A stretch of 63,973 nucleotides of DNA, filler included, from Trichosphaerium sp. ATCC 40318 (taxonomy: Eukaryota > Protista > Tubulinea): the NCBI GenBank assembly GCA_038496445.1. It is 3 parts of 3 records of this genome, joined end to end, with 100 filler letters (N's around TTAATTAATTAA, not from the genome) between each part and the next. Parts side by side here need not be neighbours in the genome. Positions count along the whole stretch, not along the records: positions 1 to 23,571 come from JALMLS010000080.1; 2 more parts are not named here. One strand, 5' to 3'. Shown in pieces: positions 1-21,144 of the stretch. The position numbers were made by a program, and so were the translations under genes. Below the pieces are notes generated by a model. That model had not been told where the DNA came from. It did no database searches and saw nothing but the letters and a program-made list of their open reading frames with translations. How positions within the stretch are numbered: the stretch's first letter is position 1; each line of letters opens with the position of its first letter.

Positions 1-202
1 TTTAACATTTACAACAACACAAGAAAAAAACTCGTGGGGTACTCTAGCTACTAAGGAACTAGGTATTCCGAAAATTCAGGAACATTGTACGTCCCCTACG
101 AAATCAAGTTGTTTCAAAAACCAAGACAATTGAAAACAATGTCCAAGTAAGAAAAGAGACAAAAACTCTATCTTGTAATTGGATTGTGTTTCTATTGTTT
201 AT

Positions 203-1746
203 TTAATATACGTCTCCGTTGTTGTACTCTGAGTGAACTTTGCCATCATAAGCAGATAGTACATACGAGTCACTTTTATCACCAACCACAGGACGCCATG
301 CTTTCAAGTCATATTCTCCTTCATTGTATACTTTATCGACTGCTATGCCTTTGACAATTAATGGTTTTTCATGAACACATTCTATTTGTAGGGTAAGATT
401 ATATTCATGATGTATACTAATTGTACAAACAAAAAATCGGAAAAATTATTGTGTACGTTCTGCTGTATGGTCAATAGTTGTGAAGTAGCAAGCATTTCTA
501 CCTCCCCCTTGTACACTAATTTTACCATGTCCGTACTTATCTACTGAAACCTAATACACGGTGAGAAGCGTAGCAAAAAACAAAAATTATCTGAAAAATG
601 GTGCTAAGAACATTGACTACTCACAGCTGTACGCTCATCACATGCAATACCATAAACGCGTTCTTGGTAATATGTAAGAGTTGCTATAGATAAGAATGCG
701 AGATATCGCCCCATACGATCACATGCATGAAAGTGTGTATCAGTCACAGTTCGTCTTAATAGTTTAATATCAAGCATGCTTTTGTTTAGTGTCATATCCT
801 AGCTCTGTTAATAACAGCATCAATAAAACCTCTAATGGAATACTTACTTCATTTAATGGATCCTTAAGTGCCTCCTTAGATGTAGCACTTGCACGTAGTG
901 CAGTATAAGAGTAGCTAAATGACGGTTTAGTACAAAGATAATTGCTTCAAAGAAAGAATGTGAAAACACGTACCCTGCTAGAATGGCCATACCAGCACTT
1001 GTACCAGCTACCACAAGATCACGGTTATCTATTCCATACTGTATTGCATTCATTAACCTTGAACCATTCCAATTTCTAAAGTACACAGCTTGATCACCTT
1101 GAATGGGACATTAAACTTTTTTTGTAAATCAACAATGTTAAACTGACACTAACCTCCTGCGATAAAGACACCACTAGCATTGTTTATAACATCAATGACA
1201 AAATCATCATAAGCAGCTTCACTCTTTGTTAATAGAACTAAGCGCGTTTGTCAGTAAAACCATACAATACACCTGACTTCGAAAACAAAGTTTCAAGCTG
1301 AAGCATTTTCCATGTCATGACATGATCAATTGAACATTCCTTTACTTTGTAGACGTACATGTTGAAGCTGATTCAGCTCCAAAGCCATAAGCATAATCAT
1401 TCAGCTCGTTATGCTGCGTAGCACGTATTACAACAATATTACCACGTCCTGCTTGTGAAACGAACCACTTGTTTGGTATTTTAATTGGCTGTCATATGTG
1501 TCACTTTCTACTTACCTTCCAGGCTCCATCTGAGGACGTACTGCCTCCTTGAAGGAAAAACCCTCCTTTAGGCGCAGAACAACTTTTACACGCTCCTGCA
1601 CACCTTCCCTACGCGTATTAAGTCAATTTGAGTACGTTATAGGTTGTTTGTACCTTACACCAATATTCCCAGCCGTCTCCCTTCTTATGGTCATCTGCAA
1701 CTACTGCAACGACTGCCACCACGAGTACAAGTACTAAATAACGCAT
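203..1746 (-). CDS. Secreted cyanophycinase-like serine peptidase (peptidase family S51), multi-exon
   Basis: ATG at 1746 gives a hydrophobic signal peptide (MRYLVLVLVVAVVAVVA). Exons give GGSTS..WFVSQAGRGNIVVIRA, VFIAGGDQ, nucleophile motif VAGTSAGMAIL, TDTHFHACDRMGR and GIACDERTA. Stop TAA at 205-203. Confidence 0.85.
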
Positions 1747-1981
1747 TTTGCAAGTTGTTGCCACACCAGAGATAAAAAACTTACGAGAAATACGGCTTTT
1801 ATTACCTTTTCTGTTTAAGACCTTTTGCTAGCCATCCATCTGTTCAAACCATGCTCTATGTAGAAGATTTACTTTCGCGACCTCATTTTACAAGCCACGT
1901 GCTCATTCCAACCCAAAAAAACAGTTGGAAAAGTGATCACAATGTAAATGGTCTGTGACAGTCAATACAACCCGCCTACGC

Positions 1982-4553
<2,572 letters not shown>

Positions 4554-5075
4554 ACTGAGAAAATAAACAACAGTTTGATAACCATACCCTTTACCTATTA
4601 CACGATTCATCAATAGTCAATATTAGGACGAAGACACCAATGTCTCTTTAGCATAGCCCTTGATATTTACTGACCTGTCAGTTCCATCCACGGCCACATA
4701 GTACTATTAGCAAAATTACCACATCGATATGTGAGTGTTATTTATCAACGTAAACTCGTCCATGAACAACTATGTTATTAGCTTCGTTGCCCATTTTTTT
4801 TTCTTTGCAGTGCAAAGCCAGAAAAAGATTGTTTTAAAATTTCCACAGGCTTGCAGGAGAATAGAAACAAAACACAACTTTTTTACACTAATTCTTGTTA
4901 TTTTCTTACATACTTGAACAACCAGTCTTTATCAACTTCCTTATACTGTCTTTGCTAGCAAGTAATCAAAGAGCTGGTTACCATAATATTTGAACACCAC
5001 TATTAAGATTTGAAACGCTTATGTGGTAGTAACCTGTACGTATTATTCTGTATTTCAACTCACCATCGAACTTCG

Positions 5076-6109
5076 CTATGGAAAATATAAATTGTTGGCA
5101 TACTCATCAAATGGATTCGCATGAGAAGTATATTGAACAGCATCATTAAATTCCTGTCGTGATCTACCACATTTGACTTTAGTTCCCGCAACATAAATAA
5201 TATTAGCTCCAATGAGAGATTTTACGCCTTCATTTGAAACGTCAGTGAATTGTAGGTCAATGGTATGAACACCAGAAAGCGCTTTGATGCCTTCATCTGT
5301 GACTTTAGTATATGCAAGGTCAATGGTATGAACACCAGCAAGTGATTTGATGCCTTCATCTGCCACTATAGTGTGTTGTAGGTTAATGGCATGGACCCCA
5401 GCTAGCGCTTTGACACCTTCATCTGTGACTGAAGTACAACGAAGGTTAATGGTATGAACACCAGCAAGTGCCTTTATGCCTTCATCTGTTACTTCAGTAC
5501 CCTGAAGATCGATTATGTGAACTCCAGCAAGCGCCTTAATACCTTCATCGGTAATCCCAATCTCTTCAAGGTTAATAGTATGAACTCCAGCAAGTGCTTT
5601 GACTCCTTCATCTGTTACTGACGTCTCCTGAAGGTTAATAGTATGAACACCAGCAAGCGCCTTAAGGCCTTTGTCAGTTACTCTAGTACATCGAAGGCTG
5701 ATGGTATGAACTCCAGCAAGTGCTGCTATATGTTCATCAGTGACGTATACGCCACCAAGGTGAATAGTGTGAACGCCAGCAAACTCGTTTACTACACTCC
5801 GACCAAATAATGCGTGTAAATGTATTATGGTGTGCCTTAGAACACCAGAATGTTGTGTAACTGCTTTTACATCTTTTTGGCCTATTTTAACTCTAAAGTA
5901 CCCAATAATGTCATGAATAATAGAAGCAAATGTACGGCAGGTTTGACAAATAGCAAATCGAGTTGTTGTTGTTTTAGATACTATTAAAGCTAAAATCTCT
6001 GTAGGCAACTCCAATATACTTCTGATCTCGCTTTCAATACTGTTAGAACATGCAAACATACACTAATCGCTGTTTACCGTTTATTTCGAATATCTACGCC
6101 AATAGACAT
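5076..6109 (-). CDS. F-box + leucine-rich-repeat protein (21-aa LAGVHTINL..T.VTDEGIKA repeats)
   Basis: F-box-like ILELPTEILALIV...VCRTF-type segment, then about 9 tandem 21-aa LRRs. The likely true start is ATG 6109, with a 38-nt GT-AG intron at 6077-6040 (MSIGVDIRNKR|IESEIRSILELP). Confidence 0.85.
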
Positions 6110-7239
6110 CAATACAGTAGTTTGTAGTTAATAGCTACAATCAATGAAGCTACGTTTGTAGCTAAGAAAACTTCTTCATATTAAAGACTTAGCATGTTAA
6201 GTTAGGCTAAGTAGTCATCTGTAGCACAACACGGAGTACAAATTTTTGTCACGTGATATTTGTAATTTACAGTCTTTGCTAAAAACCTTTTTGATTGCGC
6301 CCGGCTTAATACCTGAGTATGGATAATTCAATTTACTCCCTTACAATCCATGCTGTCAGAACCTCCAACGCATATTTTTTCTTGACCGTATAAACAAAAG
6401 GTATACAAGCAACCATGGTTGTGAAATTGACACTTCATTTGGGAACACGTGGATTTGATTTAGGGAGACTGTACTTGACCGTTTAACTTAGGCGCACCTT
6501 GAAAAAACTCAAACGAAGCAGTATCGATGGGAAATAGGTTTGTTATGTTCACTTTTAATATAAACCGAGTTAAGACCCATAAACATGCTTACACATGATT
6601 TAGAAGTGTAAAGCTGGGAAAACCCTCCAACTGCGTCGAAAGCACCTCTGCCCCTTTTCTGACACTTCCTAATGAAATAATAACATTGATCGCCCAAATA
6701 TCTACCGATGATATCTCTGTGCGCTGAATAGGCTACAAGTCCTTTTTATGAGCCCCACACTGTCTCAACGAATATTTTTACACAATGTGATGCTATACAG
6801 AACGGTTTGAGGTTAAACAGATGGCCACATTGTGTTGTAGGGTTTTCTGTAAAAGTCCGAAAACTCATATTTTTTTTGTGCACTATAGCGTAAATAACAT
6901 AATTCTCCACGCAAACGAGTAATTATTACATCTTTGGCAATGAGCGCACGCTACGATACTTACGGTATGTTTTAATACAGCAATAATTAAGTACAGCCTC
7001 AACCTGCTTTAAAAGCACCTACCAGGCGTTAATAGCGCTGTTGTATTTATTTGCGATAGTTTTTTCACCCAACACAGGTTAAATAGAAGAAGCATACGCA
7101 AATGGTGTGCGTAGTGTAGATTTGATATCTGTGCGCAGCAAGACAAGCTCTTGTCGTGGCTAGAACTCTTTTTTTTTTCTTCAATTTCAATCACGTGATT
7201 TTCTGTTTGAAGAAACCCAAACATGCTAATGTAGTCGTA

Positions 7240-10200
7240 GGAAACTTGAAACCCCACGCATGTTGGAAATAATCCAGCTGTCCCTGGGATGCTGTTTTCA
7301 CTAGTTTACAGTTTGTTAGTGATATTTGCGTATGTGTTGTTCTATACACAAGTACTAAGAAAGTTTAGGTGATTCCCAACAACCCGACAGTACTCACATC
7401 TAACAACATAGATGGAAGTAGAAACACATTTATTCAGTTGTTTTTACAGCATTGCTACACAAAATATCCAAAGAGGAGGAAGGAAATAGAACATAACTAT
7501 GAGGAGCATCGCTGTGGAAAATATAGCCCTGATTTTAGTGTCTGTGAAATTCACAGCTACGTTAGAAGTGTTTGTGTTTCATTTCATGCATTTTCTAACT
7601 ATAACAGCGGTTGCAAATGTGAAGGTGAGCATAATAAACTATTGCCATCCGTGCTTCTCACACATCCAGATTACAGAGTGTTGCATCAGTTGTGCATTTT
7701 TGGAGAGCAAGATATTGAAGCAAAAATATGCAACTGGCTTAATAAACGTCTTTCAGTTTCAAACAACTGTCTGACTTGCAGTGAGGGAGGGTTTAAGGCT
7801 GCTAAGGTATGTAGCTTTATATTATTTTGAAAACAACCTAATTTGATAAAGAGTGTGACATTACCGGCTTTGATTACAGTGTATCCAAATCCCAATGTTG
7901 TTCAGGACATGGCCAAATTACCTAAGACTTTAAACTCCATGGAAGGTATGTAAAGACAGTTAGCGTTTGCACTTACATAAGCAGAACTTGGGAGGCAGCT
8001 TACATTTTGATGTGGCAGCCTAAACCGCATCCACATTTCGCAACATATGTGAATAACAATGGAACTTGGTGGTTTATTGATTGTATAACATCACTTCCTG
8101 TGCTATATTCAAAGCCTTTAACTAACACATTGAAAGGAAATGCCTCTAGGGCCCACAATAGTATGTGGAAAATACAGGTGGTTGTCTACAGAGGATCACA
8201 ACACACTGTATCATGTAAAGAACTGTACAAATTGCGCCCAGAGGCAAGTAATACGAATTGACCTGATAAGTGAAAGTGACAGTTTCAGGTATGTAAATGT
8301 TGTTCCATTGCTTACAAACATCAAACAGTGACTATATCTTCAGTGACGCTGATAGTGACGCTGATAGTGACGGGAGTATTCAATCAGATGTGTCTGGCAA
8401 TAGTGTTGAGTTGGCATTTACTTCCCAAAATCAAATGGAATTGCCACGGAATATAGAATCTTTTGGGCCAAATGCAGGTGTTCAAATTGTTCAAATATTG
8501 AACAAACAAACAGCGACAGAAGCAAAAAGAAACAAAAATGGCAATCACAAGTGGCTTCTTGAAGCAACAGTAAACACAAAAAAGGGTTCTCGTAGGTGTT
8601 TTGTGTGGGAATGCTATAGGTAAGTAATCTATTTTTTAAACCTCACATCTTGTTTTTCTAACCAACAATAGGTTTTAACAAAAAGTTATCTTGTAAGCTG
8701 TTAAAAAGACACCACTCATTGGCAAACAAATTTCCAATATCTGAAACACCTATAGTTACAACTATAAAAGGGCCAACTAAACTTCCAAGGCTTGTTGTAC
8801 AACGTACAATGTTAAAAATGAGGCACCAAGTACAATGGCCAACAAAAAAAGGTTCAAGACAGAAGGATTACTGTTGATGATACATTGTCTTAACTTCTGT
8901 CACAGAAACACCTTCTACAAGCTCATCAACCACTGCTTCACAGCCAACTGTTGCACCAACAACGGATGCTCCAACTATTGCTGCACACAACAACAGATGC
9001 ACCTAACTGGTACTTGCTTGATATTTTTTAGCTTTCTTTCTAACTGTGATAGATGCGCCAACTACACCTACAACTGCAGCCCCTACCACAGCCACACCAA
9101 CAACTGATGCTCTTACTGCAAGTACTCCAACAATAGAACTGCTAACAACAGCTTCAACTACAGATGCTCCTATCACCAAAACCCAGCTCCAACCGCCAAT
9201 GTACCTATGACTGAAGCTCCAACAACAAAAGCATCAACCACAATTTTACTTTTCTCCTAACAGTGATAGATGCACCAACAACGGAGGCTCCAACCACAGA
9301 GGTTCCTACAACTCCTGCGCCAACAACAGAAGCGCCAACAACACAGCATCCAACTACAATGCCACCAATGACGCCTCCACCAACTACAGAAGCACCTACA
9401 ACTGAAACTCCAACTACTGAGGCACCAACAACTGGTACTTGATTTATATTGTTATCTTTTTCCATCTAACAGTAATGAATGCACTAACTACACAAGCACC
9501 AAGCACAGAAGCACCAACAACTGCAACCCCTACCACTGATGCGCTAACAACGGAGGCTCCTACAACTGCAGCCCCTACTACTGAGGCTCCAACAACTGAG
9601 GCTCCTACAACTGCAACCCCTACAACTGTAGCACCTACTACTGGCTCCAACTACAGAAGCACCAACTACTGAGGTACCTACCACTGAAGCTCCTACAACT
9701 GTAGCACCTACTACTGAAGCCCCTACTACGGAGGCTCCAACTACAGGAGCTCCTACAACCGAAGCTCCAACTGCTGCTCCTACCACGGATGCACCTACAA
9801 CCGAAGCTCCAACGACAGAAGCACCAACTACAGAGGTTCCAACAACATTGGCGCCAACGACAGAGGCACCAACAACTGACGCACCAACAACTGAAGCACC
9901 TACAACTGTAGCGCCTACCACTGAAGCACCTACAACTGTAGCACCTACTACATTGGCGCCTACTACGGAGGTTCCCACGACTGAGGCACCAACTACAGTA
10001 GCTCCTACGACTGAAGCTCCAACGACAGAAGCACCAACGACTGAGGCTCCAACCACTGTAGTGCCTACTACAGATGCACCAACAACTGATGCACCAGTGA
10101 CAGATGCTCCAACAACTGAAGCCCCAACAACTGAAGCTCCAACAACAGAAGCACTAACGACTGAGGCTCCAACTACAGAAGCACCTACAACTGTAGCACC

Positions 10201-11990
10201 AACAAGTGGTACTTTGTATTTTACTTTCTAAAGCAACTAACTTTCTTTGTAGATGCTCCTACAACTGAAGTGCCTACGACAGAACCACCAACAACGGAGG
10301 CACCAACTACAGAAGTGAAGCTCCAACAACTGAAGCGCCAACCACTGAAGCTCCAACTACAGAGGCTCCAACAACGGAGGCTTCAACTACAGAAGCGCCA
10401 ACCACTGAGGCACCAACAACTGAAGCACCAACAACTGTAGCACCTACTACAGCAGCTCCAACAGCAGAAGCCCCAACTACAGAGTCGCCTACAACTGATG
10501 CACCAACAACAGAGTCACCAACTACAGCTACTCCTACAACAGCAGCACCAACAACTGAAGCTCCTACCACTGCAACCCCTACAACTGACGCTCCAACTAC
10601 TGAATCTCCAACTACAGAGGCTCCTACAACTGAAGCTCCAACTACGGAACCTCCAACGACTGAAGCACCAACTACTGATACTCCAACTACTGATGCTCCT
10701 ACAACTGAAACACCAACTACTGACGCTCCAACTGATGCACCAACTACAGAGGCTCCTACAACTGTAGCACCAACAACTGAAGTGCCAACAACTGAAGCTC
10801 CAACCACAGATGCACCTACTACTGAAGCACCAACAACCGTAGCACCAACTACAGATGCTCCAACCACCGAATCGCCAACTACTGAGGCTCCAACAACTGA
10901 ACCACCTACAACTGATGCGCCTACAACTGAAACTCCAACTACTGAAGCACCTACAACTGTAGCACCAACAACTGGTACTTTGTATTTTACTTTCCAAAGC
11001 AACTAACTTTCTTTGTAGATGCACCAACTACAGATGCCCCAACAACTGTTGCACCAACAACCGAAGCACCGACTACTGAAGTCCCTACTACAGAATCGCC
11101 TACAACTGATGCGCCAACAACAGAGGCTCCTACCACTGATGCTCCTACAACTGCTACCCCAACAACTGCGGCTCCAACAACGGAGGCACCAACTACTGAA
11201 ACTCCAACGACAGAGTCTCCAACAACAGAAGTGCCTACAACAGATGCTCCAACAACAGAAGCTCCAACTACTGAAGCTCCAACGACAGAGTCTCCAGCAA
11301 CAGAAGCACCTACAACAGATGCACCTACGACTGAAGTTCCAACTACTGAAGCACCTACAACTATAGCGCCAACAACTGGTACTTTGTCGTTTACTTTCTA
11401 TATGGGAACTTACCTTATTTGTAGAAGCACCAACAACAGCTACTCCAACGACTGACGCACCGACTACAGAGGCACCAACAACTGCTGCTCCTACCACTGA
11501 AGCTCCAACCACAGATGCGCCAACAACTGAGGCTCCAACAACAAACGCTCCTACCACTGTAGCGCCTACTACAGATGCACCAACAACAGAGGCTCCTACA
11601 ACGGAAGCGCCAACAACTGAAGCGCCAACTACTGAAGCTCCAACCACCGAATCGCCAACTACTGAGGCTCCAACAACTGAACCACCTACAACAGATGTCC
11701 CTATGACTGAAGCTCCAACTACTGATACACCTGCAACTACAACTGAAGCTCCTACTAAATCTCCAACTACAAAGGCTCAATAAATGGTACTTCCAACTTT
11801 ACTTTCTAGAACTAACTTTATTTACGGAGGCAACTACAATAGTACCTTCAAGTGCTTCATCAACTGCTGAGGTACCTTGTACAGATGCATCTACAACTGA
11901 TGCTTGGCTTCAACTAAATAAACTACACCAAAGACGCCTACTGCATCCAAAGAAGCTCCAAGGCTTTTACAAGGCACTATTTTTATGGCT
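7240..11990 (+). pseudogene. Degenerate spliced cargo gene: USP-like cysteine-peptidase domain followed by a long Thr/Pro mucin-like (APTTE)n region
   Basis: Cys-box-like WK*SSCPWDAVFTSLQ (~7264-7310), CxC/CxxC pairs, LPALITV..LPKTL, His-box-like PHFATYVNNNGTWWFID (~8030-8080), terminal IQVVVYR. Then pentapeptide repeats 8950-11780 with GT-AG introns. In-frame stops and frameshifts are present. Confidence 0.55.
8950..11780 (+). repeat. 15-bp tandem repeat array encoding APTT(E/D/V/A), interrupted by re-duplicated introns
   Basis: Repeating GCNCCNACNACNGAR units. Closely related introns (GTACTTTGT..TTTACTTTC..TTTGTAG) at 10209-10252, 10975-11018 and 11379-11424, with more diverged copies at 9010, 9435 and 11787. 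Confidence 0.95.
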
Positions 11991-13401
11991 ACTAAAAAAG
12001 CAATTTGCTAATTAAGATGATGCCGAAGATGGGTGTATTTATGTATTGTTTTAAGTGTAATTGTATATTTACATACTCGTTGGAGCCCTTTGTACATGGG
12101 TACCCAATATGGAAAGTGTGTTGGACGTGTAACATTGTCCGAAAATAAAATATGGTTTCTGTGAACACGAAAAAAACGCTGCGGATGCTGCTCAAATTTG
12201 TTTAAGATTGTGTACGAAAATAGGAGCGCTATGGACCAGTTAACATAGTCGCCTGGGTGTGGAGAGCAGGTTTAGACAAGTTTTAGACCAATTACTAAGA
12301 CTGGCGACTATTCAGCGCATGGAGATATACGATACAAGATAGTACAATTAAGTCACCTCTTCTCGGATATTATTCACGATAATGTTGGCTACATCAAAGC
12401 CACAATAACAACACGATTGGATGTTGACACGATATCACAATATGCAGGTGTTCTGAGACATACAAATATTGTTTATCTGTTACAAGAAGGAGAGCCTTTG
12501 GCTAAACTCTCAGGTGTTCATACGATAAAACTTGAGCAATGCAAACGTAACAGATGTTTCAGCTTTGGCTGGTGTACACACAATTAATTTGGCTGATACA
12601 AAAGTAAGCTGTGTTTCAGCTTTGGCTGGTGTTCACACCATAAACGTCAGTTACACAAAAGTAACAGACTCAAGTGTTTCGGATCTTGCTGGTGTACATA
12701 CAATCAATCTGGCAGGTATTAATGTACATGACTCTACATTAATAGCGCTTGCTGGTGTACACTCAATAAATCTCACATCATGTGACAGTATAACTGGAAA
12801 AGGCATTAGAGCGCTTGCTGGAGTCCATACTATAGATCTAAGCAATTGCCGTCCTCAAGACCCAAGTTCATATCAGTCATTGGCTGGTGTTCACACAATC
12901 TATTTGAGTAATACCAATATAAGGGATGATGACTTAAAAGCATTCTCAGGTGTACATGCCATAAGTCTTCATCTATGTAGTCAAATCTCAGATGATGGAG
13001 TTAAACATCTTTCAGGTATTCATACTATTTACCTTGGTGGTACTGGAGTAACAGATGAAGGGCTCAAAGCTCTCGAAGGTGTTCATACTATTTACTTATT
13101 TGACATGCCATTGGAACATAAAATCACCGATAAAGGGATAAAATGTTTGGCTGGAGTTCATACAATCCTAATCTCAGGCCTAAGTAAAGTAACAAATAAG
13201 GACATTGCAGCTCTTGTTGGTGTTCATGAGATTACAATAGAAAAAATGCCTAAAATAACAGAGAGTGGAGTTAGTGTATTGAAAGATGCAATTATCAATT
13301 TACAAGATCATTAATTGTCACTACATGTACCACGTGTCTTGCCTTATTCACACTTGTTCTCGGATACTCGTCAATAATTTCATGTGTTAATTGTTCAGTT
13401 A

Positions 13402-14440
13402 CAGGGCTGAAACTCAGCTAGGCATTGCCTTAAAAAATGATGCATATTCCTAACATTTGGCATTAGATGGCAAAATCAAGGCATTTGCATTTGGCAATGC
13501 CCAATAAAATAAGGCATTTTTACAAAAAGGCAATGCCTTCATCAAAAAGGCATTGATACCAGGCATTTTTGGGCATCTTTTGGCATTGCATAAAATCAGG
13601 TAATGCCTTGTATTGCATTTTTTGGCATTGCATAAAATCAAGTAATGCCCTGTATTGCAAGTACTTTATGCCTTTATTATGCCTTATTTTTTTAAGCAAT
13701 ATATGCCTTGTATTTTAATTCATATATAAGGCATTGCCTATACTATATCATAGGACTGATCACATTAAGGAAGTGGTTTAAGGTAAGTAACAGTCAAACA
13801 ACTTTTACACTTTTTTTTTCACATCACCTACTGACGTTTTATATAGACAGGCACCTAGCGCTCTTAGTAATTCATGAAATTAGACGAAACCACCGCCAAA
13901 CGAACCGCAGCACCCTATTTCATCTACAACAGTAGTAGGAGTGAACTCCGCGATATTTCCAGGACCGCGGAATTCTAACACTACAAGGTAAGTTTTTTTT
14001 TTTTTTTTTTCTACACCATCTCATATTTTCTTTAAGGTTTTTTCAAATGTGGACTTAGGAGTTTTGTGTATTGTATGTGTACTGTATTATAAAATAAATA
14101 ATTGTGTTATTACCTGAAAATGCCCTGGTTTATTAGGCACTGTAGACTATGATAATGCTTCCTTTTTGCCTTCAAAATAAGGCATTGATGCATGAGTTAT
14201 GCCCTAATTTGAAGGGCATAATTCTTAAAAATATGCAGGCAAAACCATTGCAATCTTGTGTACCAGATGCAGGCATTTTTCATCAAATATAAGGCATTTT
14301 TGGAGCAAAAAATAAGGCATTGCCCTGTATTTGCCTTTTTGAATGAGGCAAAAACTAGGCATTTTTGTAAAAAATAAGGCATTATTTGGATGAAAATGCC
14401 TAGGCATTGTCCAAAAATGCCTTGTTGAGTTTCAGCCCTG
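13402..14440. mobile_element. Non-autonomous TIR DNA transposon (MITE-like), CAGGGCTGAAAC termini, copy A
   Basis: TIR CAGGGCTGAAACTCA...TGAGTTTCAGCCCTG, TTA on both flanks, dense subterminal AGGCAT(T)/AATGCCT motifs, no transposase ORF. Confidence 0.92.
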
Positions 14441-14479
14441 TTATAGTCCTTGATTATTCGAGAAGACTACATAACAATT

Positions 14480-15582
14480 CAGGGCTGAAACTAAACAAGG
14501 CTTTGCCTTAAATATGAAGGCATTTTTTTAAAATCAGGCATTGATGGCAAAAATCAGGCATTTAAAAATGGCAATGCCTGATCTTGCAAAGGCAATGGCA
14601 ACAAAGGCAAAAATCAGGCATTGAAATAAGGCTTTGTTGGGCATTGCCTTAATTGTTGCAAAGCCTTGTTTTTTTTAGGCAATGCCTGCCCTAGTTTTTT
14701 TATGCATTGCCAGCCTTAAATTTACAGGCACCAATTAGGCATTGGTTGTGTACACATTGTACATTAAGGATACATTGGTTTAAGGTAAGTTTCCACCACA
14801 CCAACACTTCCTAAACATTTTTTTCCATTTACTACTGACGTTTTATATAGACAGCGTCACCATGCGCTTAGTATTTTATGGATTCTAACGAAACCGCCGC
14901 CATTCGAACCGCAGCACCCAAATGCACCTACAACAGGAGTAGAGGTACTTTAAACCATTTTTCCAGTCCACGAAAATTATACCAATAATTTGTTAATTTT
15001 TTTTTCTAGCTAAAGGTTTTTTTTCACATGGAGGCCATTGAAGTTTTTTGTGTTTTGTGTACTGTACTTTAATAAATGAATCACTATTGTATGCCTATAT
15101 AAAGCCTTGTTTTATGAGTATATGGTGCCTGAGTTATGCCCAAAAATTGAGGGCAAAAATGCCTCATTGTTGCATTAAAAATGAGGCATTATTGGACCAA
15201 CAATGCAGGCTATTTTAAGGCTAATTAGTGAACCAGTTGCTTGCTATTTGGCCCAAATATGAGGCTCTAAAGCCCAAAATTACAAGGCAATGCCTCATAT
15301 TTGCTCATTTTTTTTGGCAAAAACAAGGCAATTTGGTGAAAAATAAGGCTGGCAATGCATAAAAAAACTAGGGCAGGCATTGCCTAAAAAAAACAAGGCA
15401 TTGCAACAATTAAGGCATGGCCCAACAAAGCCTTATTTCAATGCCTGATTTTTGCCTTTTTTGCCATTGCCTTTGCAAAATCAGGCATTGCCATTTTTGC
15501 ATGCCTGATTTTTGCCATCAATGCCTGATTTTAAAAAAATGCCTTCATATTTAAGGCAAAGCCTTATTTAGTTTCAGCCCTG
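14480..15582. mobile_element. Non-autonomous TIR DNA transposon with ~238-bp TIRs, CAGGGCTGAAAC termini, copy B
   Basis: 14480-14718 and 15344-15582 are near-perfect inverted repeats. Same 13-bp tip and AGGCAT motifs as copy A, and a homologous core. Confidence 0.95.
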
Positions 15583-15754
15583 ATACGAGAGATCAAGGCT
15601 GGCAAGAGTATATGACTGTTATATGGTTGTATTGTTTCAATCACTAATGGATTACATACCAAGATGTGATGATGGAATAACAATGACTCTGTCACTGTCG
15701 TCTATTGTTAATTGGACAAGAAATCTTGAAAGGAAAAAAGAAACAAACCATATT

Positions 15755-16697
15755 CAGGGGTAAAAATATTCTCAGCAAATAAATAGCATTTGCCAGCAAA
15801 ATTTACTGGCAAATCATAAGATTTTGCTGGCAAAAAAATCCATTAAATTCAGGGTTTTTGCTGGTTTTTTTGGCAAACATTACTTGCAAATATCGTCATT
15901 TGCCAGCAAATATCCATGGTATTTGCTGAAAATACACAGTAAAAAAAAACACATTTGACAATAAAACCAGTCAGGAGTTTCAATCAATGCACAAGTTATT
16001 TTATTTAAATCACATGCACAAATACAAAATCACATTACAATGTACATAGAGTGTTTTTCTGTTGGGTGATTGGAATATTTCGCCATATGATTCTATACCA
16101 TGTACCCCCCTGTAAAATGGTGCTGCGCATCTAATGCAAGTGGTTTCATCAAAATCCGTGTATTACTAAGAGCTACAGAAGTATGTAAATATAAATCGCT
16201 CGAAAATAAATAAATTAATACTTACATACCTCCGGACGCCTGCGGAAGGCAGGTACTTCCATAATACTTTTGTTGTTAATGTAAATTGGTCTTGCGGTCA
16301 CAGGGAGCTTCGTTTGGTTAAATTCCATCAATTACTAAGAACGCTACATACCTTTTAATAGTGATCATCCAAAATCGTTTTGGGCTCACATTGAAAAAGT
16401 ATGTCAAGTCAAAGAGTTTTTTCTTGGGAATATTATAGCTGGTGTTTTTTGGCCAACTCAGCAAAACCATGGCATTTGCCAGCAAATGGCAAATATTTGG
16501 ATTTGCTGGCAAATGACAGTTCTTGTTAATTTGCAAAATGGCAAAACCATGGCATTTGCCAACAAACAGCAAATATCAAGATTTGCCATCAAATGACAGT
16601 TTTTGCCATTTCAGTAAAAATGGCAAAACTCAGCATTTGCCAGCAAGTGGCAAATATCAAAATTTGCCAGCAATTGCCATAGATATTTTTACCCCTG
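15755..16697. mobile_element. Non-autonomous TIR DNA transposon, CAGGGGTAAAAATAT termini, copy C
   Basis: TIR CAGGGGTAAAAATAT...ATATTTTTACCCCTG. 2-bp TT duplication; removing the element plus TT restores CAT ATT GTT GTT GTA. Subterminal TTTGCCAGCAAA repeats. Confidence 0.92.
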
Positions 16698-17061
16698 TTG
16701 TTGTTGTACTGGAAGAATTAGAAGAATTCAAAGAAAGTATAAAGAAAGTTCCTCTAAAGACTGACTTTCCTAAATATGAAGGTACCCTTCATACTGATTA
16801 ATAGCTCTCAATAATAAGTAAATTTATAGGTGGAGATGACTTTAATAAGGCTATACAGTATATTAAAGAACAGTTTACATGGCAAAGTGGAAAGATTGAT
16901 GTTATACTTGAAACATCTTTTGGATGGAACGAAGCACGTCTGTTTGTTAGTAGGGGATATGGTCCTTTGTTATTTTAAAATTGGAATGAGCCTTCGATTG
17001 ATAGCAAGACTCGTCTGTAATTGATAGATTTTAGTGATGTAGGTAACTAGTAAAGTCAAGT

Positions 17062-18551
17062 TTAAAGACTCTGAGAATCAGTCCAACTCTCTGATCCAGA
17101 ATTATCAAAAAATGATACTGTGTTTTGTTCAGGCTCGCCAAGACCAAGATCATCTACTGTAGGTAAATCATCTACAGCGGAAGGAGCACTCTTTTTCTTA
17201 GAGGTCTCGCTAGACTTTTTCCTTTTGCTCTTTTTCTCCACAGCAGCCTATATTACCAAAATTAAGAAAATAATGAGATTTGAACAAAGTTGTCTACAAA
17301 GTCAAGGAAAGTTGTTTCATTTTCAAAGTTTACGCACTTTTTTAGCGTTTCTTTCGGCACGTTTTTCCCTTCGCTTTTTCTTGTCTTCTTTTATTGCTTG
17401 CTTATCCTTTGAGGCACGTTCTTTTTTAACTTTTTCAATTTTTTTCTTATTCGCTCTTTGTTGTGTTGGTGTCTTTGCTACTTTTTGATCAAGTTTACCA
17501 TAAACTAAACGGTATGAATTAGATGTAAAATATGTAAGTAATAGTATAATAACAGGAATATCCACGAGTTAAGAAATTTGCAAAGAAACAAACGTTTCCA
17601 ACCAAACAAAAAAAAAAAGAAATGGTGTCACGACTAACCTTCAATAGCCTTTGATTTTTCGGTTTCCTGTACAAGTTCATCATTTAGAGTAATGAGACTA
17701 TGTAATCGAGAGATTGTGTACAACCTAAAAGCACCATGAACACAACGAAATAACAATCGCGCATTTTCCTGTCGCTGAGAGCAAAAAAAAAAAAAAAGAA
17801 AGTAAAAACACGTGTTTATTTTATTGCTCCAAAACTGGTAAATTCTGTTTCGTTGCAGTGTGGGCAAGGCAAAAATACACGTATATTGGGAAGTAGATAC
17901 ACGATAAAAAAAATATGCAAAAAAAACGTGATGCTTTCTGGGTACCTAAAATCACTATACTGCTTCGGTGAGCCTCCATTCATGTAGTTAGGGCATGCCT
18001 CGTTACCCAACATACTTAGGTGTTCAATATAAGGACAACTAGTAACGAGGGTATCGATGAAAGCGACCAAGTTGTCAATTTCGTTTTTGTTAACCCTCTC
18101 GTAGCGTTAGTACCGCCTAACAGTTGAACTAGATATGGTACGGCAAAAATACATGAAGAATACACGAAATATGCGAAATTCGCAACAAATCAAATCTACA
18201 AAATAAGAAAAGGCGCGTACCACAGTGTTTTAAGCTTTGGGAGCGGTGGGAAGAGTGAGAAGGCGGTCAAGCAATTGCTATCCGCAACAAGTGTCTCTAA
18301 TTCCACAAAGCTGCGAAGAGCCGATAAATTGCTATTGACGCTCGTTTTAGAAGGAAAGCAGCAATATTACCAATACCTTATGTTATTATCTGTCAAATCG
18401 AGAGTTCGAACATACCGAGCATATAATTGTACTAAAACGTATCAGCCAGAGGCTTCTTAACAATCGTACTAATTTTCAATGGAATATCATCAATGTTATT
18501 AAAAGCGAGGCTTAAGCGATCACCCTTTAATGGTGACTTTGGACCACTCAT
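17062..18551 (-). CDS. LRR protein resembling LRMDA/C10orf11, with a Lys-rich C-terminal tail
   Basis: RLSLAFNNI, LWVNKNEIDNLVAFIDTL..IEHLSMLGNEACPNY..YSDFRLYTISRLHSLITLND (LRR plus LRRcap as in LRMDA). ATG 18551, TAA 17064-17062. Confidence 0.7.
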
Positions 18552-18734
18552 TGTGACATGTCCTGTTTTCTCGTGTCAAAAACCAGAAGCAATGAAAATC
18601 AGAGCGAAAATCGTTTGGTCTTCAACAGTAATACAGACACTTCTCACTGAGGACCGAGTCATATAACAAGCTCTTTGGTAGTGTACAAATGCTTCAAGAG
18701 CGCTATAAAGCATTTTAGATAACTACAGATCTGA

Positions 18735-21144
18735 ATGTCTTTTTTACTTGATGACCAGCAAGTACGTGCTCTGTGTATCACCGCAGTATTATTTACACGC
18801 GCTTTGCTATATAATTTGGGTTATATTGCACTATTCATATAATAAATGTTTTTAGGATGATATAAGAGGCCAATTGCTACAAGAGAGAAAGCTTAGACAG
18901 AAAGCAGAGCAAAAATATACAAAACTACTTGAACGCGTTAAAAAAGCACAAGCACTACCAACAGAGATAATAGAGGAAGTGGAAGTATCAGTACCATCCT
19001 CACCAGTACGTCGGAGGCTTGTACGCTTTATTTTTTTATTAACTTGTTTTTGCAAAAAAAGGTTGTCGAACACTCTCAAGGAGACCCTGGTTTAGTAGCT
19101 TTGTACTCCCCAAGCTTCCCAAGATCGAAAAAAGTATGAAATGTTTTCTTTTTTCTTTATAACTTAATCTTATTATATTATAGCCTGAAGACACTTATTT
19201 ATCGTCAGCACGCGTTGACAAGTACGTTTGATTTTTTTTGTACCAGTGAAACGGAGCACCAATGCTATTCCTGATTTTTGGAGAATTTGATAATCATTGA
19301 TTTCCTTCTTCATTCATTGTCACAAAACTGATTATCATAGACTTCTGTCAGAATCTAGTAATGCAAAGGCTGATTTCTCAACTGAAACGGTTACTACAAA
19401 CAATGCAAACGATCAACAATTGGCAGAATTGAAGCGGTTAAATGAAGAATGCCAAAAATTAAAAGCAGAAAGAACAGATTTACAAAAACAACTGTTAGAT
19501 CAATCGGAAGCTATTAGGATTGTACAAGTACGTTTTCTTTGAATACGCGGTATAGTAGAAATGTCATCTTTGATGCAAAAAAAATTGTTGAGATGAGATA
19601 AGCACGCAACAAGCTTGTTGCAAAATTTATTTGTTTACTTTTTATAGCTTATTTTGTGTTGCTTACTTCTACTTTTTTAGAAAGGTAAAGCAGTATCAGA
19701 TACCACCCTGGATGTTACTAGAGATTTAACTATTAAACTCAAGGACGCACTGGAAGCTAAAATGGAAGAGGTTCGTTGAAAAACTTGACATGAGATCTTT
19801 TGAAAGAATTCCTTCTTTGTTCGCTTAACATGATGACATGCATGTATCTCTTTCTAACTTATTAATCAAGATAATTAAATTAAAACAAGAGATCGAAGAG
19901 CTCAAGAAACATGACCAGCGGTATAAGCTTGTGTGCAACGAAAAACTGTACGTCCTCTCGACTTTTTTAGTTTTAGTCAAAGAACAACTGTTTATCTTTA
20001 TGCTAATTTTTTGTGACACAGACAGCTGGAAGTTGATAAAGTTACATGGGGATCAAAGTACACTATGATAAACGAGGAAAAGAATAAACTAGCAGCACTT
20101 TGTAGAGAAAAGTAAGTTGTCAGCTAAACAGAGAAAAAAAACCATAAAAAAAACACGTCGCCGCTGGAGCAAATCTGTTTTCTTCTCTCTGTCTTTTTTT
20201 TGGTTTTCCTTCTCTGTTATGCTTCCAGTTATACGTTATGTTAATATTATTCTGTTTAGGGATGAAACTATACAAGGTTTAGAGAGTTTAATAGAGTCTA
20301 AAGATGATACTATTGAAAAAATGGCAAGAAAGTTGCTTAACTTAAAAAATCGAATAGATAATGTAGAAGTGCAAATGTGTAAGTTCTTCGTAAAGAAAGT
20401 ATACAAATTCTTCTACACAAACACTGATGCCACTGTACGTATACACTCATTTCTGAAAATTACAAAAAAGAATTTCTAAAAACAAGCCAATTTTCTTGTG
20501 TTCAAAGAAACCAAACTGTCTTGCCGGGTGTTGTATTTTTTTCAGTTCTACTGTTCTACAAACTTCTTTGTATATCTTACTAACTTGAATTTATAGTTGG
20601 TTGTATCAAAAGCACCTACTACTGCTGTTTATAGCTTGGATATTTTTACAAATGGAAAACGAACAACTCATCCATTTGACACAATACAGTCAATTTTAAA
20701 ACATACAGACTCTACTACACGATTCACAATACAGTATACGGTACGGTTTTAAACTATTTTATGTGTTAAAAAGATACTTGTTATTGACAAACCAAAAAAC
20801 GAAAAAAACAAGAAAAAGTGCCAGTAGATTTATTTTTGAAAGAATTTTTGGTTTTGGATTTTTTGCTTTTGCTTTGACTTAGTTTCATCTAGGATGCTGG
20901 TCATACCGATGTATTCGAGTCAGCTATTAGGGAAGAAGTATTAAACGCCTTATATGGGTACTATAAGAAACATACAAAGACAGCAAAAAAGAAAAAAGAG
21001 CTTCAAGAGCGAAAAGGAAAAAAAGAGTCACCTACAAAATCAAGGCCTCCTTCATCACCTAAAAAGGATATTAATGGGAAAGGAAATGATGCTGATGCCA
21101 AAAAAAGTGGTAAAAAAGTTAGTAATAGCCCTACAAAGGCTTGA
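18735..21144 (+). CDS. Coiled-coil protein with a possible C-terminal PH-like domain
   Basis: MSFLLDDQQ|DDIRGQLLQERKL..; several heptad-rich exons; terminal globular segment CKFFVKKVYKFF..RFTIQYT..FESAIREEVLNAL. TGA at 21142-21144. Confidence 0.6.

Follow-up and report, generated by a model that had tools for sequence, protein, structure and literature searches.

An internally deleted transposon of a probably piggyBac-like, ATAT-inserting family interrupts an F-box/LRR gene in Trichosphaerium sp. ATCC 40318

The window, by which is meant the whole 63,973-nucleotide stretch of Trichosphaerium sp. ATCC 40318 DNA analysed here, contains at positions 6715-12324 a non-autonomous DNA transposon of the cut-and-paste type that was recently mobile. 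The transposon sits in a coding exon of a gene for an F-box/leucine-rich repeat (LRR) protein, and its ~5.6 kb hold the remnant of a multi-exon gene with Cys- and His-containing motifs. It is an internally deleted and decayed copy, probably belonging to a very divergent piggyBac-like family that inserts at ATAT. The genome searched was a 70.3-Mb assembly of 642 contigs, in which the studied stretch is contig C442. The features that delimit the insertion and its host gene, with terminal inverted repeat abbreviated as TIR, are:

5076-6059, minus strand: neighbouring paralogue of the host gene (Pfam F-box-like and LRR_6)
6599-6714, plus strand: 5' part of the host F-box/LRR open frame (366-codon frame on contig C3, paralogue alignment)
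6711-6714, no strand: left ATAT of the target-site duplication (empty sites on C3 and C95, 22 copies)
6715-6731, plus strand: left TIR, CTCTGTGCGCTGAATAG (15 of 17 bases match the right end)
12308-12324, minus strand: right TIR, the reverse complement of CTCCATGCGCTGAATAG (match to the left end)
12325-12328, no strand: right ATAT of the target-site duplication (empty-site comparison)
12325-13314, plus strand: 3' part of the host gene, with the rest of the F-box and then LRR_6 repeats (Pfam LRR_6 E 3e-11; tblastn with the paralogue)

The boundaries were obtained by querying window positions 1-20000 against the whole genome. Contig C3 matches positions 1-6714 at 99% and then directly resumes with positions 12324-13404. 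The stretch in between was found at more than 12 other places; every match begins at position 6710 or 6711, and the complete ones finish at 12328. All nine copies extracted from the window's subfamily start with ATAT-CTCTGTGCGCTGAATAG and end with the reverse complement of ATAT-CTCCATGCGCTGAATAG, while the DNA outside the ATAT is unrelated from copy to copy. ATAT likewise flanks both ends of 13 additional complete elements that belong to other subfamilies. Complete copies were thus inspected in 22 cases, drawn from at least four subfamilies, and all 22 have ATAT on both flanks. Two empty sites were identified. The site on C3 reads GATG-ATAT-ACGA, with a single ATAT where the filled site has one on each side, and on contig C95, the empty counterpart of the copy on C562, the overlap is exactly four bases, again ATAT. 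These alleles carry a single clean ATAT and may never have been occupied. The C3 junction, the copy boundaries and the empty sites together establish the element as 6715-12324. Its TIRs are 17 bp long with 15 of 17 bases matching (19 of 21 when the ATAT is included), and the TIR 21-mer, with up to three mismatches allowed, occurs 68 times genome-wide compared to 0-1 times for a reversed control. The identity of 99.8% between the window copy and the copy on C589 across 2 kb, and the absence of the window copy from C3, point to recent movement.

A sequence-only reading of the same DNA had recognized a mobile element here and placed it at 7003-12270. A repeated, mobile unit of ~5.6 kb does exist, and in every copy it runs from 6711 to 12328. 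The inverted repeats proposed by that reading (CCTGCT..CCAGGCG) are internal, 292 bp from the true left end and 58 bp from the true right end. Beyond the 21-bp ends, inverted similarity between the subterminal 370-bp regions, with the true TIR masked, was at chance level; the best internal inverted local score was 22, compared to 19.4 ± 2.4 in shuffled sequences, and was reached by 53 of 300 shuffles. The flanks TCAA and TTTA, taken for remnants of a TTAA target, are not the duplicated target, which is ATAT. Copies and empty sites were indeed recovered from the genome, many of the former and two of the latter, with ATAT in place of an intact TTAA.

On C3, one open frame of 366 codons is continuous across the insertion site and aligns with the neighbouring F-box/LRR paralogue over 314 residues (E 2e-64). 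The insertion point falls within ...IAQISTDDIRYKIVQL..., inside the F-box. Because the C3 frame runs across the site and the site lies inside the F-box, the interrupted segment of the host gene is a coding exon and not an intron. The insertion is present on C442 and absent from the 99%-identical C3. F-box/LRR genes do flank the element, as had been noted, and the GTATGT proposed as the donor of a ~44-nt host intron is present at 6965; that donor and its acceptor at ~12280 are both located inside the element and are missing from the empty allele, which makes such an intron impossible. A second association of the element's ends with F-box/LRR genes was observed at C38:340000-347600 (L028) and C28:1-2800 (L039), where a left-end-like TIR stands directly upstream of long F-box/LRR open frames. 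Approximately 110 bp at these loci resemble window positions 6711-6820 (77%), and the DNA retrieved there contains no right end to match.

The gene remnant inside the element was divided into putative exons by homology between subfamilies and by splice signals, introns in this genome being short (39-50 nt) and of the form GTAYGT...CTAAC...AG. The resulting model is:

6940-6964, plus strand: putative coding exon 1, beginning with ATG (donor GT at 6965, probable acceptor at 7239-7240; the phase fits the next exon)
7241-7329, plus strand: putative Cys-box exon, HSCPWDAV..GL....C (motif invariant in four subfamilies)
7369-7806, plus strand: putative large exon of the N-terminal domain, with CxC and CxxC motifs (open frame)
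7906-7945, plus strand: putative small exon (copy alignment, translation comparison)
7985-8288, plus strand: putative His-box exon or exons, ..YILMWQP..HF.TYV..G.WWFIDC.. and ..WK.QVVVYRG.. (copy comparison)
8329-8619, plus strand: acidic linker and a conserved G.(R/H)KW...C.VWEC segment, with the deletion junction at 8605-8613
8672-8847, plus strand: putative basic exon, C-terminal region of the transposase (downstream of the core in the copy on C331; approximate boundaries)
8904-11786, plus strand: Pro/Thr-rich (E-A-P-T-T)n region (15-nt unit, ~148 repeats)

The initial ATG and the donor (GTATGT or GTACGT) are kept in all aligned copies. Further along, the window copy shows decay. An in-frame TAA at 7270-7272 interrupts the Cys-box exon, giving WK-stop-SSCPW in the window and WNNHSCPW in the C331 copy, and a 1-nt deletion near 7934 shifts the frame relative to the copies on C331, C562 and C372. 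The His-box region has lost 18 nt near 8093, which keeps the frame, and 2 nt at 8239, which shifts it.

The search with the TIR revealed several subfamilies with near-identical ends. Using pieces of the C41 element, tblastn distinguished three sister subfamilies, namely C41/C283, C120/C349/C423/C563/C611 and C48/C199/C573. All three share the window's N-terminal region, comprising the Cys-box, large and His-box exons, and all three carry downstream of it a further ~1.5 kb of conserved exons, referred to here as the core. The same extra exons were found in a 7,675-bp copy of the window's own subfamily on C331, which is 96% identical to the window over 6711-8613 and whose core lies precisely where the window has its junction, at 8605-8613. 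Window positions 8400-8613 correspond to positions 6498-6287 of this locus (L032), and window positions 8605-9003 correspond to its positions 4140-3745. Since adjoining window segments map apart in the C331 copy and overlap by 9 bp at the junction, the window copy lacks 2.1 kb. The deletion is common to all other copies of the mucin type, and it was therefore a deletion derivative that was amplified. Copy lengths range from 5.1 to 8.7 kb, with a variable Pro/Thr-rich region. In the 8.7-kb copy of the window's subfamily (L031, C228:28500-38200), unrelated DNA of ~2.2 kb occupies the point that corresponds to window 8354; this is probably a nested insertion. On each of contigs C372 and C377, two copies lie ~10 kb apart and face opposite ways, and on C372 (L016) one copy has its right end directly against the left TIR of another element, with a common AT-rich junction.

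Purifying selection acts on both the N-terminal part and the core. The ratio of nonsynonymous to synonymous substitution rates (dN/dS) between subfamilies, with synonymous sites saturated, is 0.11-0.29 for N-terminal exons and core exons alike; it is 0.29 for the large exon, which is 36% identical to its C41-subfamily homologue (E 2e-25), and 0.20-0.27 for the His-box exon or exons. This range identifies the N-terminal exons and the core as functional parts of the element's protein. What the sequence-only reading took for the cargo of a new family, carried in place of a transposase, is likely what the deletion left of the transposase gene of the element itself, its N-terminal and C-terminal portions; the same domains are joined to the core on C331 and in the three sister subfamilies. 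The observation that the window copy has no transposase was sound, as its core was lost with the 2.1 kb. The partner element with the same ends that this observation called for exists in the form of the C331 copy, although a 2-nt frameshift precedes its core.

As a whole, a 5.3-kb element at 7003-12270 with a degenerate TTAA target, lodged in a first intron and representing a family with foreign protease/mucin cargo, can be given practically no credence. Its motifs are present where they were placed, and the window copy does lack a transposase core. Every copy extends beyond its ends on both sides, its inverted match is at chance level, the empty alleles contain neither the proposed exon 1 nor the acceptor and are coding through the site, and on C331 and in the three sister subfamilies the domains it counts as cargo occur together with a transposase core. 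The empty sites and the copy boundaries refute it. For annotation, a false intron and a false 'novel cargo-carrying element' are removed, an insertion disrupting an F-box/LRR gene is identified on one of two near-identical contigs, and a transposon family with several subfamilies and recent activity is defined.

The affiliation of the core was examined in sister copies, the window copy being without the core domain, and all profile, Pfam and structure tests were made exon by exon. Exon profiles were aligned by hhalign with a 14-sequence piggyBac template, made up of 11 PF13843 proteins collected with one ordinary piggyBac open reading frame (ORF) of this genome and three genome ORFs. The first core exon aligned with template positions 131-162 (P 0.041), and the exon with CLDE..LPG aligned with positions 201-227, at the invariant DE that includes the first catalytic Asp (P 0.0026). 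The exon with ATDSYYT fell on positions 283-314, at MDNLF (P 0.0033), and that with KP.PV.LYS.LKN.CD.FN on positions 363-416, at YN..MNGVD..DQL (P 0.019). Finally, the Cys-rich C-terminus of the C120 subfamily, C..C...C..C...CF..YH, aligned with positions 526-565 (P 0.12). The five matches are collinear with the piggyBac profile and cover all three catalytic motifs, with a Fisher combined p of 8e-6; in column shuffles, 0-1 of 60 reached the observed score for each of the four catalytic-core profiles tested. Pfam matches below threshold were confined to one clan: three subfamilies matched DDE_Tnp_1_4 at positions 205-261 (E 0.007-0.14), and DDE_Tnp_1_7 was matched at positions 261-318 (E 0.025). 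These weak but collinear matches suggest that the core is a very divergent piggyBac-type DDD transposase. The fixed palindromic 4-bp target and the short TIRs fit the piggyBac mode, and the TIR length of 17 bp is within the piggyBac short-TIR range of about 12-19 bp. Of the piggyBac affinity proposed by the sequence-only reading, then, the relationship itself gains support from the collinear sister cores, while the TTAA target and the CC..GG ends on which it had been based do not stand.

Several results weigh against this assignment. No exon piece of the window and sister copies, the core pieces included, scored above a curated Pfam threshold, and a genome scan with PF13843 matched other, ordinary piggyBac copies and none of these elements. 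Searches of three core pieces against PDB profiles gave chance matches only, and the profile of the exon with the second catalytic Asp, searched against 1.84 billion representatives, returned one repetitive false match and no relative. An initial hhalign comparison, against a poor profile made of six sequences from the piggyBac ORFs of this genome, gave no significant match. AlphaFold2 (AF2) models had a predicted local distance difference test (pLDDT) score of 45.4 for the first core piece and 46.5 for the large N-terminal exon. The exon model is itself a prediction. The C331 copy, with its frameshift before the core, is the sole core-bearing member of the window's subfamily in the assembly. 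The target, ATAT in two empty sites and 22 of 22 copies, departs from the piggyBac hallmark TTAA. In other comparisons, pairwise phmmer reached no significance, the ESM Atlas yielded for the first core piece only a 0.75-score lead to DUF8422, and an exact look-up of two ORFs from this genome found neither in the collection searched. Ordinary piggyBac genes that pass the PF13843 cut-off were observed on C84, C405, C65 and C124 (near-identical) and, as frames of ~690 aa, on C193, C397, C135 and C455; they are separate from the ATAT family.

These negatives could also be read to mean that the family belongs to another cut-and-paste superfamily with a 4-bp AT-rich target-site duplication (TSD), such as Sola2 or an undescribed one, and that the piggyBac motifs reflect only general DDE/RNase-H similarity. 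Such a reading would account for a target other than TTAA, for curated piggyBac models that stay below threshold and for very large searches without relatives, and chimeric Sola2 elements are reported to have imperfect TIRs of 21 bp and 4-bp TSDs, ATAT among them (PMC3627910). It is nevertheless improbable. Five exon profiles match piggyBac collinearly and at the motifs where matches are expected, the sub-threshold Pfam matches belong to the IS4/piggyBac group, and 17-bp TIRs with a fixed palindromic 4-bp target agree with the piggyBac mode.

The Pro/Thr-rich region had been correctly recognized as APTT repeats. Tandem Repeats Finder (TRF) resolved a 15-nt unit encoding E-A-P-T-T in ~148 copies, forming an array at 9494-11738. 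Intron-like spacers of 44-46 nt at 10209-10252, 10975-11018 and 11379-11424 are part of a larger tandem unit, and at least three frameshifts, near 9200, 9630 and 10310 by frame tracking, are unexplained by the spacers. The region would be translated as part of the same protein as the upstream exons. The internal deletion appears to alter the splice phase, and the repeat region of the window copy would therefore be out of frame even were the rest intact. Pro/Thr repeats occur only in the window's subfamily; the sister subfamilies have a Cys-rich domain at this position, and tblastn with the C41 pieces did not find that domain in the window's subfamily. This distribution, the great length of the region with its own intron-like spacers, and the conditional nature of its in-frame translation would also fit a captured fragment of a host gene, that is, true cargo and not a transposase tail. 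Capture is considered unlikely. The spacers, being part of the larger tandem unit, are not evidence of a foreign gene, and by eye the putative exon at 8672-8847 continues the homology with the basic C-terminal region of the sister transposases. Genome matches to 9272-12328 all lie inside element copies with no separate host locus, which is weak evidence as the search skips simple repeats.

The N-terminal region of the predicted protein shows a fixed order of motifs: HSC(P/A)WDAV..L..V.. (with a final Cys in three of four subfamilies), CxC, CxxC followed by GG.K, Y.LMWQ...H(F/Y)T.YV...WWF(I/V)D, and W(K/R)V..V(V/I)Y(K/R). Two Cys residues are candidates for the catalytic position, and only that of HSC(P/A)W is invariant. 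The sequence-only reading had described a gene with Cys and His boxes in the style of ubiquitin-specific proteases (USP). A multi-exon remnant with such motifs is present, and the signals for a USP fold are weak. In hhalign comparisons with USP exon profiles from this same genome, the His-box exon aligned with GHY..W..D (E 0.021, a score that 0 of 100 shuffles reached) and the Cys-box exon with GL.N.GN.C (E 0.091, 2 of 100 shuffles); swapped pairings, such as the His-box exon with USP Cys boxes, were not significant. The His-box exon of C331 additionally gave a match to Peptidase_C12 (PF01088) at positions 162-197, the catalytic His/Asp region, with an E of 0.04 and 14.2 bits against a cut-off of 27. 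By eye, the order of Cys, CxC/CxxC and His/Asp resembles that of USPs (Cys box, zinc-ribbon fingers, His/Asp box). The best guess from these sequence comparisons, held by a modest preference, is that the domain is a clan-CA deubiquitinase-like peptidase.

It is quite conceivable that the domain is instead an unrelated zinc- or DNA-binding one. PF00443 (ubiquitin C-terminal hydrolase, UCH) had no match on the exon pieces or, at E up to 10, in the genome scan, and PDB profile searches with two N-terminal pieces gave chance matches only. The large exon (7369-7806) had no match in Pfam, PDB or the ESM Atlas, nor in a profile search of 5.8 billion clusters, and it did not align significantly with USP finger or thumb exons by hhalign (finger P 0.27, 23 of 100 shuffles). 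The low pLDDT of its AF2 model points the same way, as does the replacement of one candidate Cys (..SDIC) by Asn in the C48 subfamily. Set against a non-peptidase domain are the specificity of the His-box match for the USP His/Asp box over the USP Cys boxes, the exact coincidence of the sub-threshold match to Peptidase_C12 with the catalytic His/Asp region, the Cys-box alignment with the USP motif and the overall Cys...CxC...CxxC...His...Asp order, which by eye is the thumb-fingers-palm order of USPs. A chromodomain-like segment suggested at 8480-8620 was not borne out, as Pfam Chromo (PF00385) had no match on 8333-8620 or its homologues and in a genome scan (E up to 10) matched other loci only. 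The segment corresponds to the conserved G.(R/H)KW...C.(L/V)W(E/D) motif.

The probable history of the copy can be outlined. The family has 17-bp TIRs, inserts only at ATAT with a 4-bp duplication and has full-length members of 5-7.7 kb. Its single, multi-exon gene would encode a conserved Cys/His N-terminus of ~330 residues, an acidic linker that includes a short conserved segment, a very divergent piggyBac-type DDD core and a C-terminal part, the last being a Cys-rich domain in the sister subfamilies and a long (EAPTT)n tail in the window's subfamily. In the latter, a derivative lost its 2.1-kb core by deletion between 9-bp microhomologies and multiplied to at least 10 copies, presumably with transposase supplied in trans. 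The window copy landed in the F-box coding exon and has since acquired a premature stop and more than one frameshift.

Compared to C3, the window contig has four additional transposon insertions. A 1,039-bp element at 13402-14440, with inverted ends beginning CAGGGCTGAAACT... and a TTA target duplication, has more than 25 copies at 97-100% identity genome-wide and looks like a recently active non-autonomous element of the PIF/Harbinger type. The insertion at 14480-15582 is bounded by inverted ends of 118 bp, which likewise open with CAGGGCTGAAACT, and has copies on C460, while the insertion at 15754-16698 has CAGGGGTAAAAATAT ends and copies on C155 and C312. Elsewhere, ~1 kb from a solitary TIR match, locus L029 (C47:66200-73500) contains at 1497-2948 a frame of 484 codons with a Condensation domain of the nonribosomal peptide synthetase (NRPS) type (Pfam E 8.5e-17).

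Considered together, the data may tentatively be taken to describe an undescribed piggyBac-related lineage whose transposase switched its target from TTAA to ATAT and bears a fused USP/UCH-like deubiquitinase domain at its N-terminus under purifying selection, which has no detectable relatives in public protein collections, and in one subfamily of which the Cys-rich DNA-binding tail was swapped for a Pro/Thr repeat of ~700 residues. piggyBac is a major genome-engineering tool, valued for its strict TTAA targeting and scarless excision. If the above is correct, a natural relative with an equally strict ATAT preference would help to explain how target choice is encoded and could widen the genome-engineering toolbox. 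The fusion of a deubiquitinase-like domain to a piggyBac-type transposase would likewise add to the link between transposases and peptidases of ubiquitin-like modifiers and would point towards a common way of countering control by the host.

Compared to piggyBac elements (PF13843; T. ni piggyBac, PGBD), the family is alike in its short TIRs, its duplicated fixed palindromic 4-bp A/T target, the single tetranucleotide of its empty alleles and the existence of non-autonomous derivatives with internal deletions; weak alignments suggest that it is also alike in the order of the core exons at the three Asp motifs and in the Cys-rich C-terminus of the sister subfamilies. It differs in using ATAT and not TTAA, in ends of the form CTC...GAG and not CCC...GGG, in having no curated model above threshold, in its many short introns and in the ~330-residue N-terminal Cys/His domain; the window's subfamily differs further in having the (EAPTT)n tail in place of the Cys-rich domain. 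For single piggyBac sequences, ATAT has been recorded only as a rare exception (PMC5381638). In Sola2, the TSDs are variable (ATAT, AAAT, ATTT) and the imperfect TIRs are ~21 bp long (PMC3627910). On the level of TSD and TIR descriptions, at which alone the two were compared, Sola2 shares with the present family a 4-bp AT-rich TSD that can be ATAT and imperfect TIRs of ~21 bp; its TSD varies whereas that observed here is strictly ATAT, and the weak matches of the core are to models of the piggyBac/IS4 type.

Transposases fused to peptidases of ubiquitin-like modifiers include those with Ulp1/C48 in Mutator-like elements (MULEs) and Zisupton and with OTU in some Helitrons. The present family would resemble these by analogy in carrying a clan-CA Cys peptidase-like domain in a transposase gene under purifying selection, while its motifs are closer to USP/UCH (C19/C12) and the partner is a piggyBac-like core; a search of a paper library found no report of this combination of a USP/UCH-like domain with a piggyBac-like core. 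The window copy is finally comparable to deletion derivatives of the Ac/Ds or P-element type, in which a deletion at microhomologies keeps both ends and the product is amplified in trans. These belong to other superfamilies, and the derivative described here differs from them in that 1.9 kb coding for the N-terminal part and 3 kb of repeat tail are still in place, and so has the appearance of an element carrying a gene.

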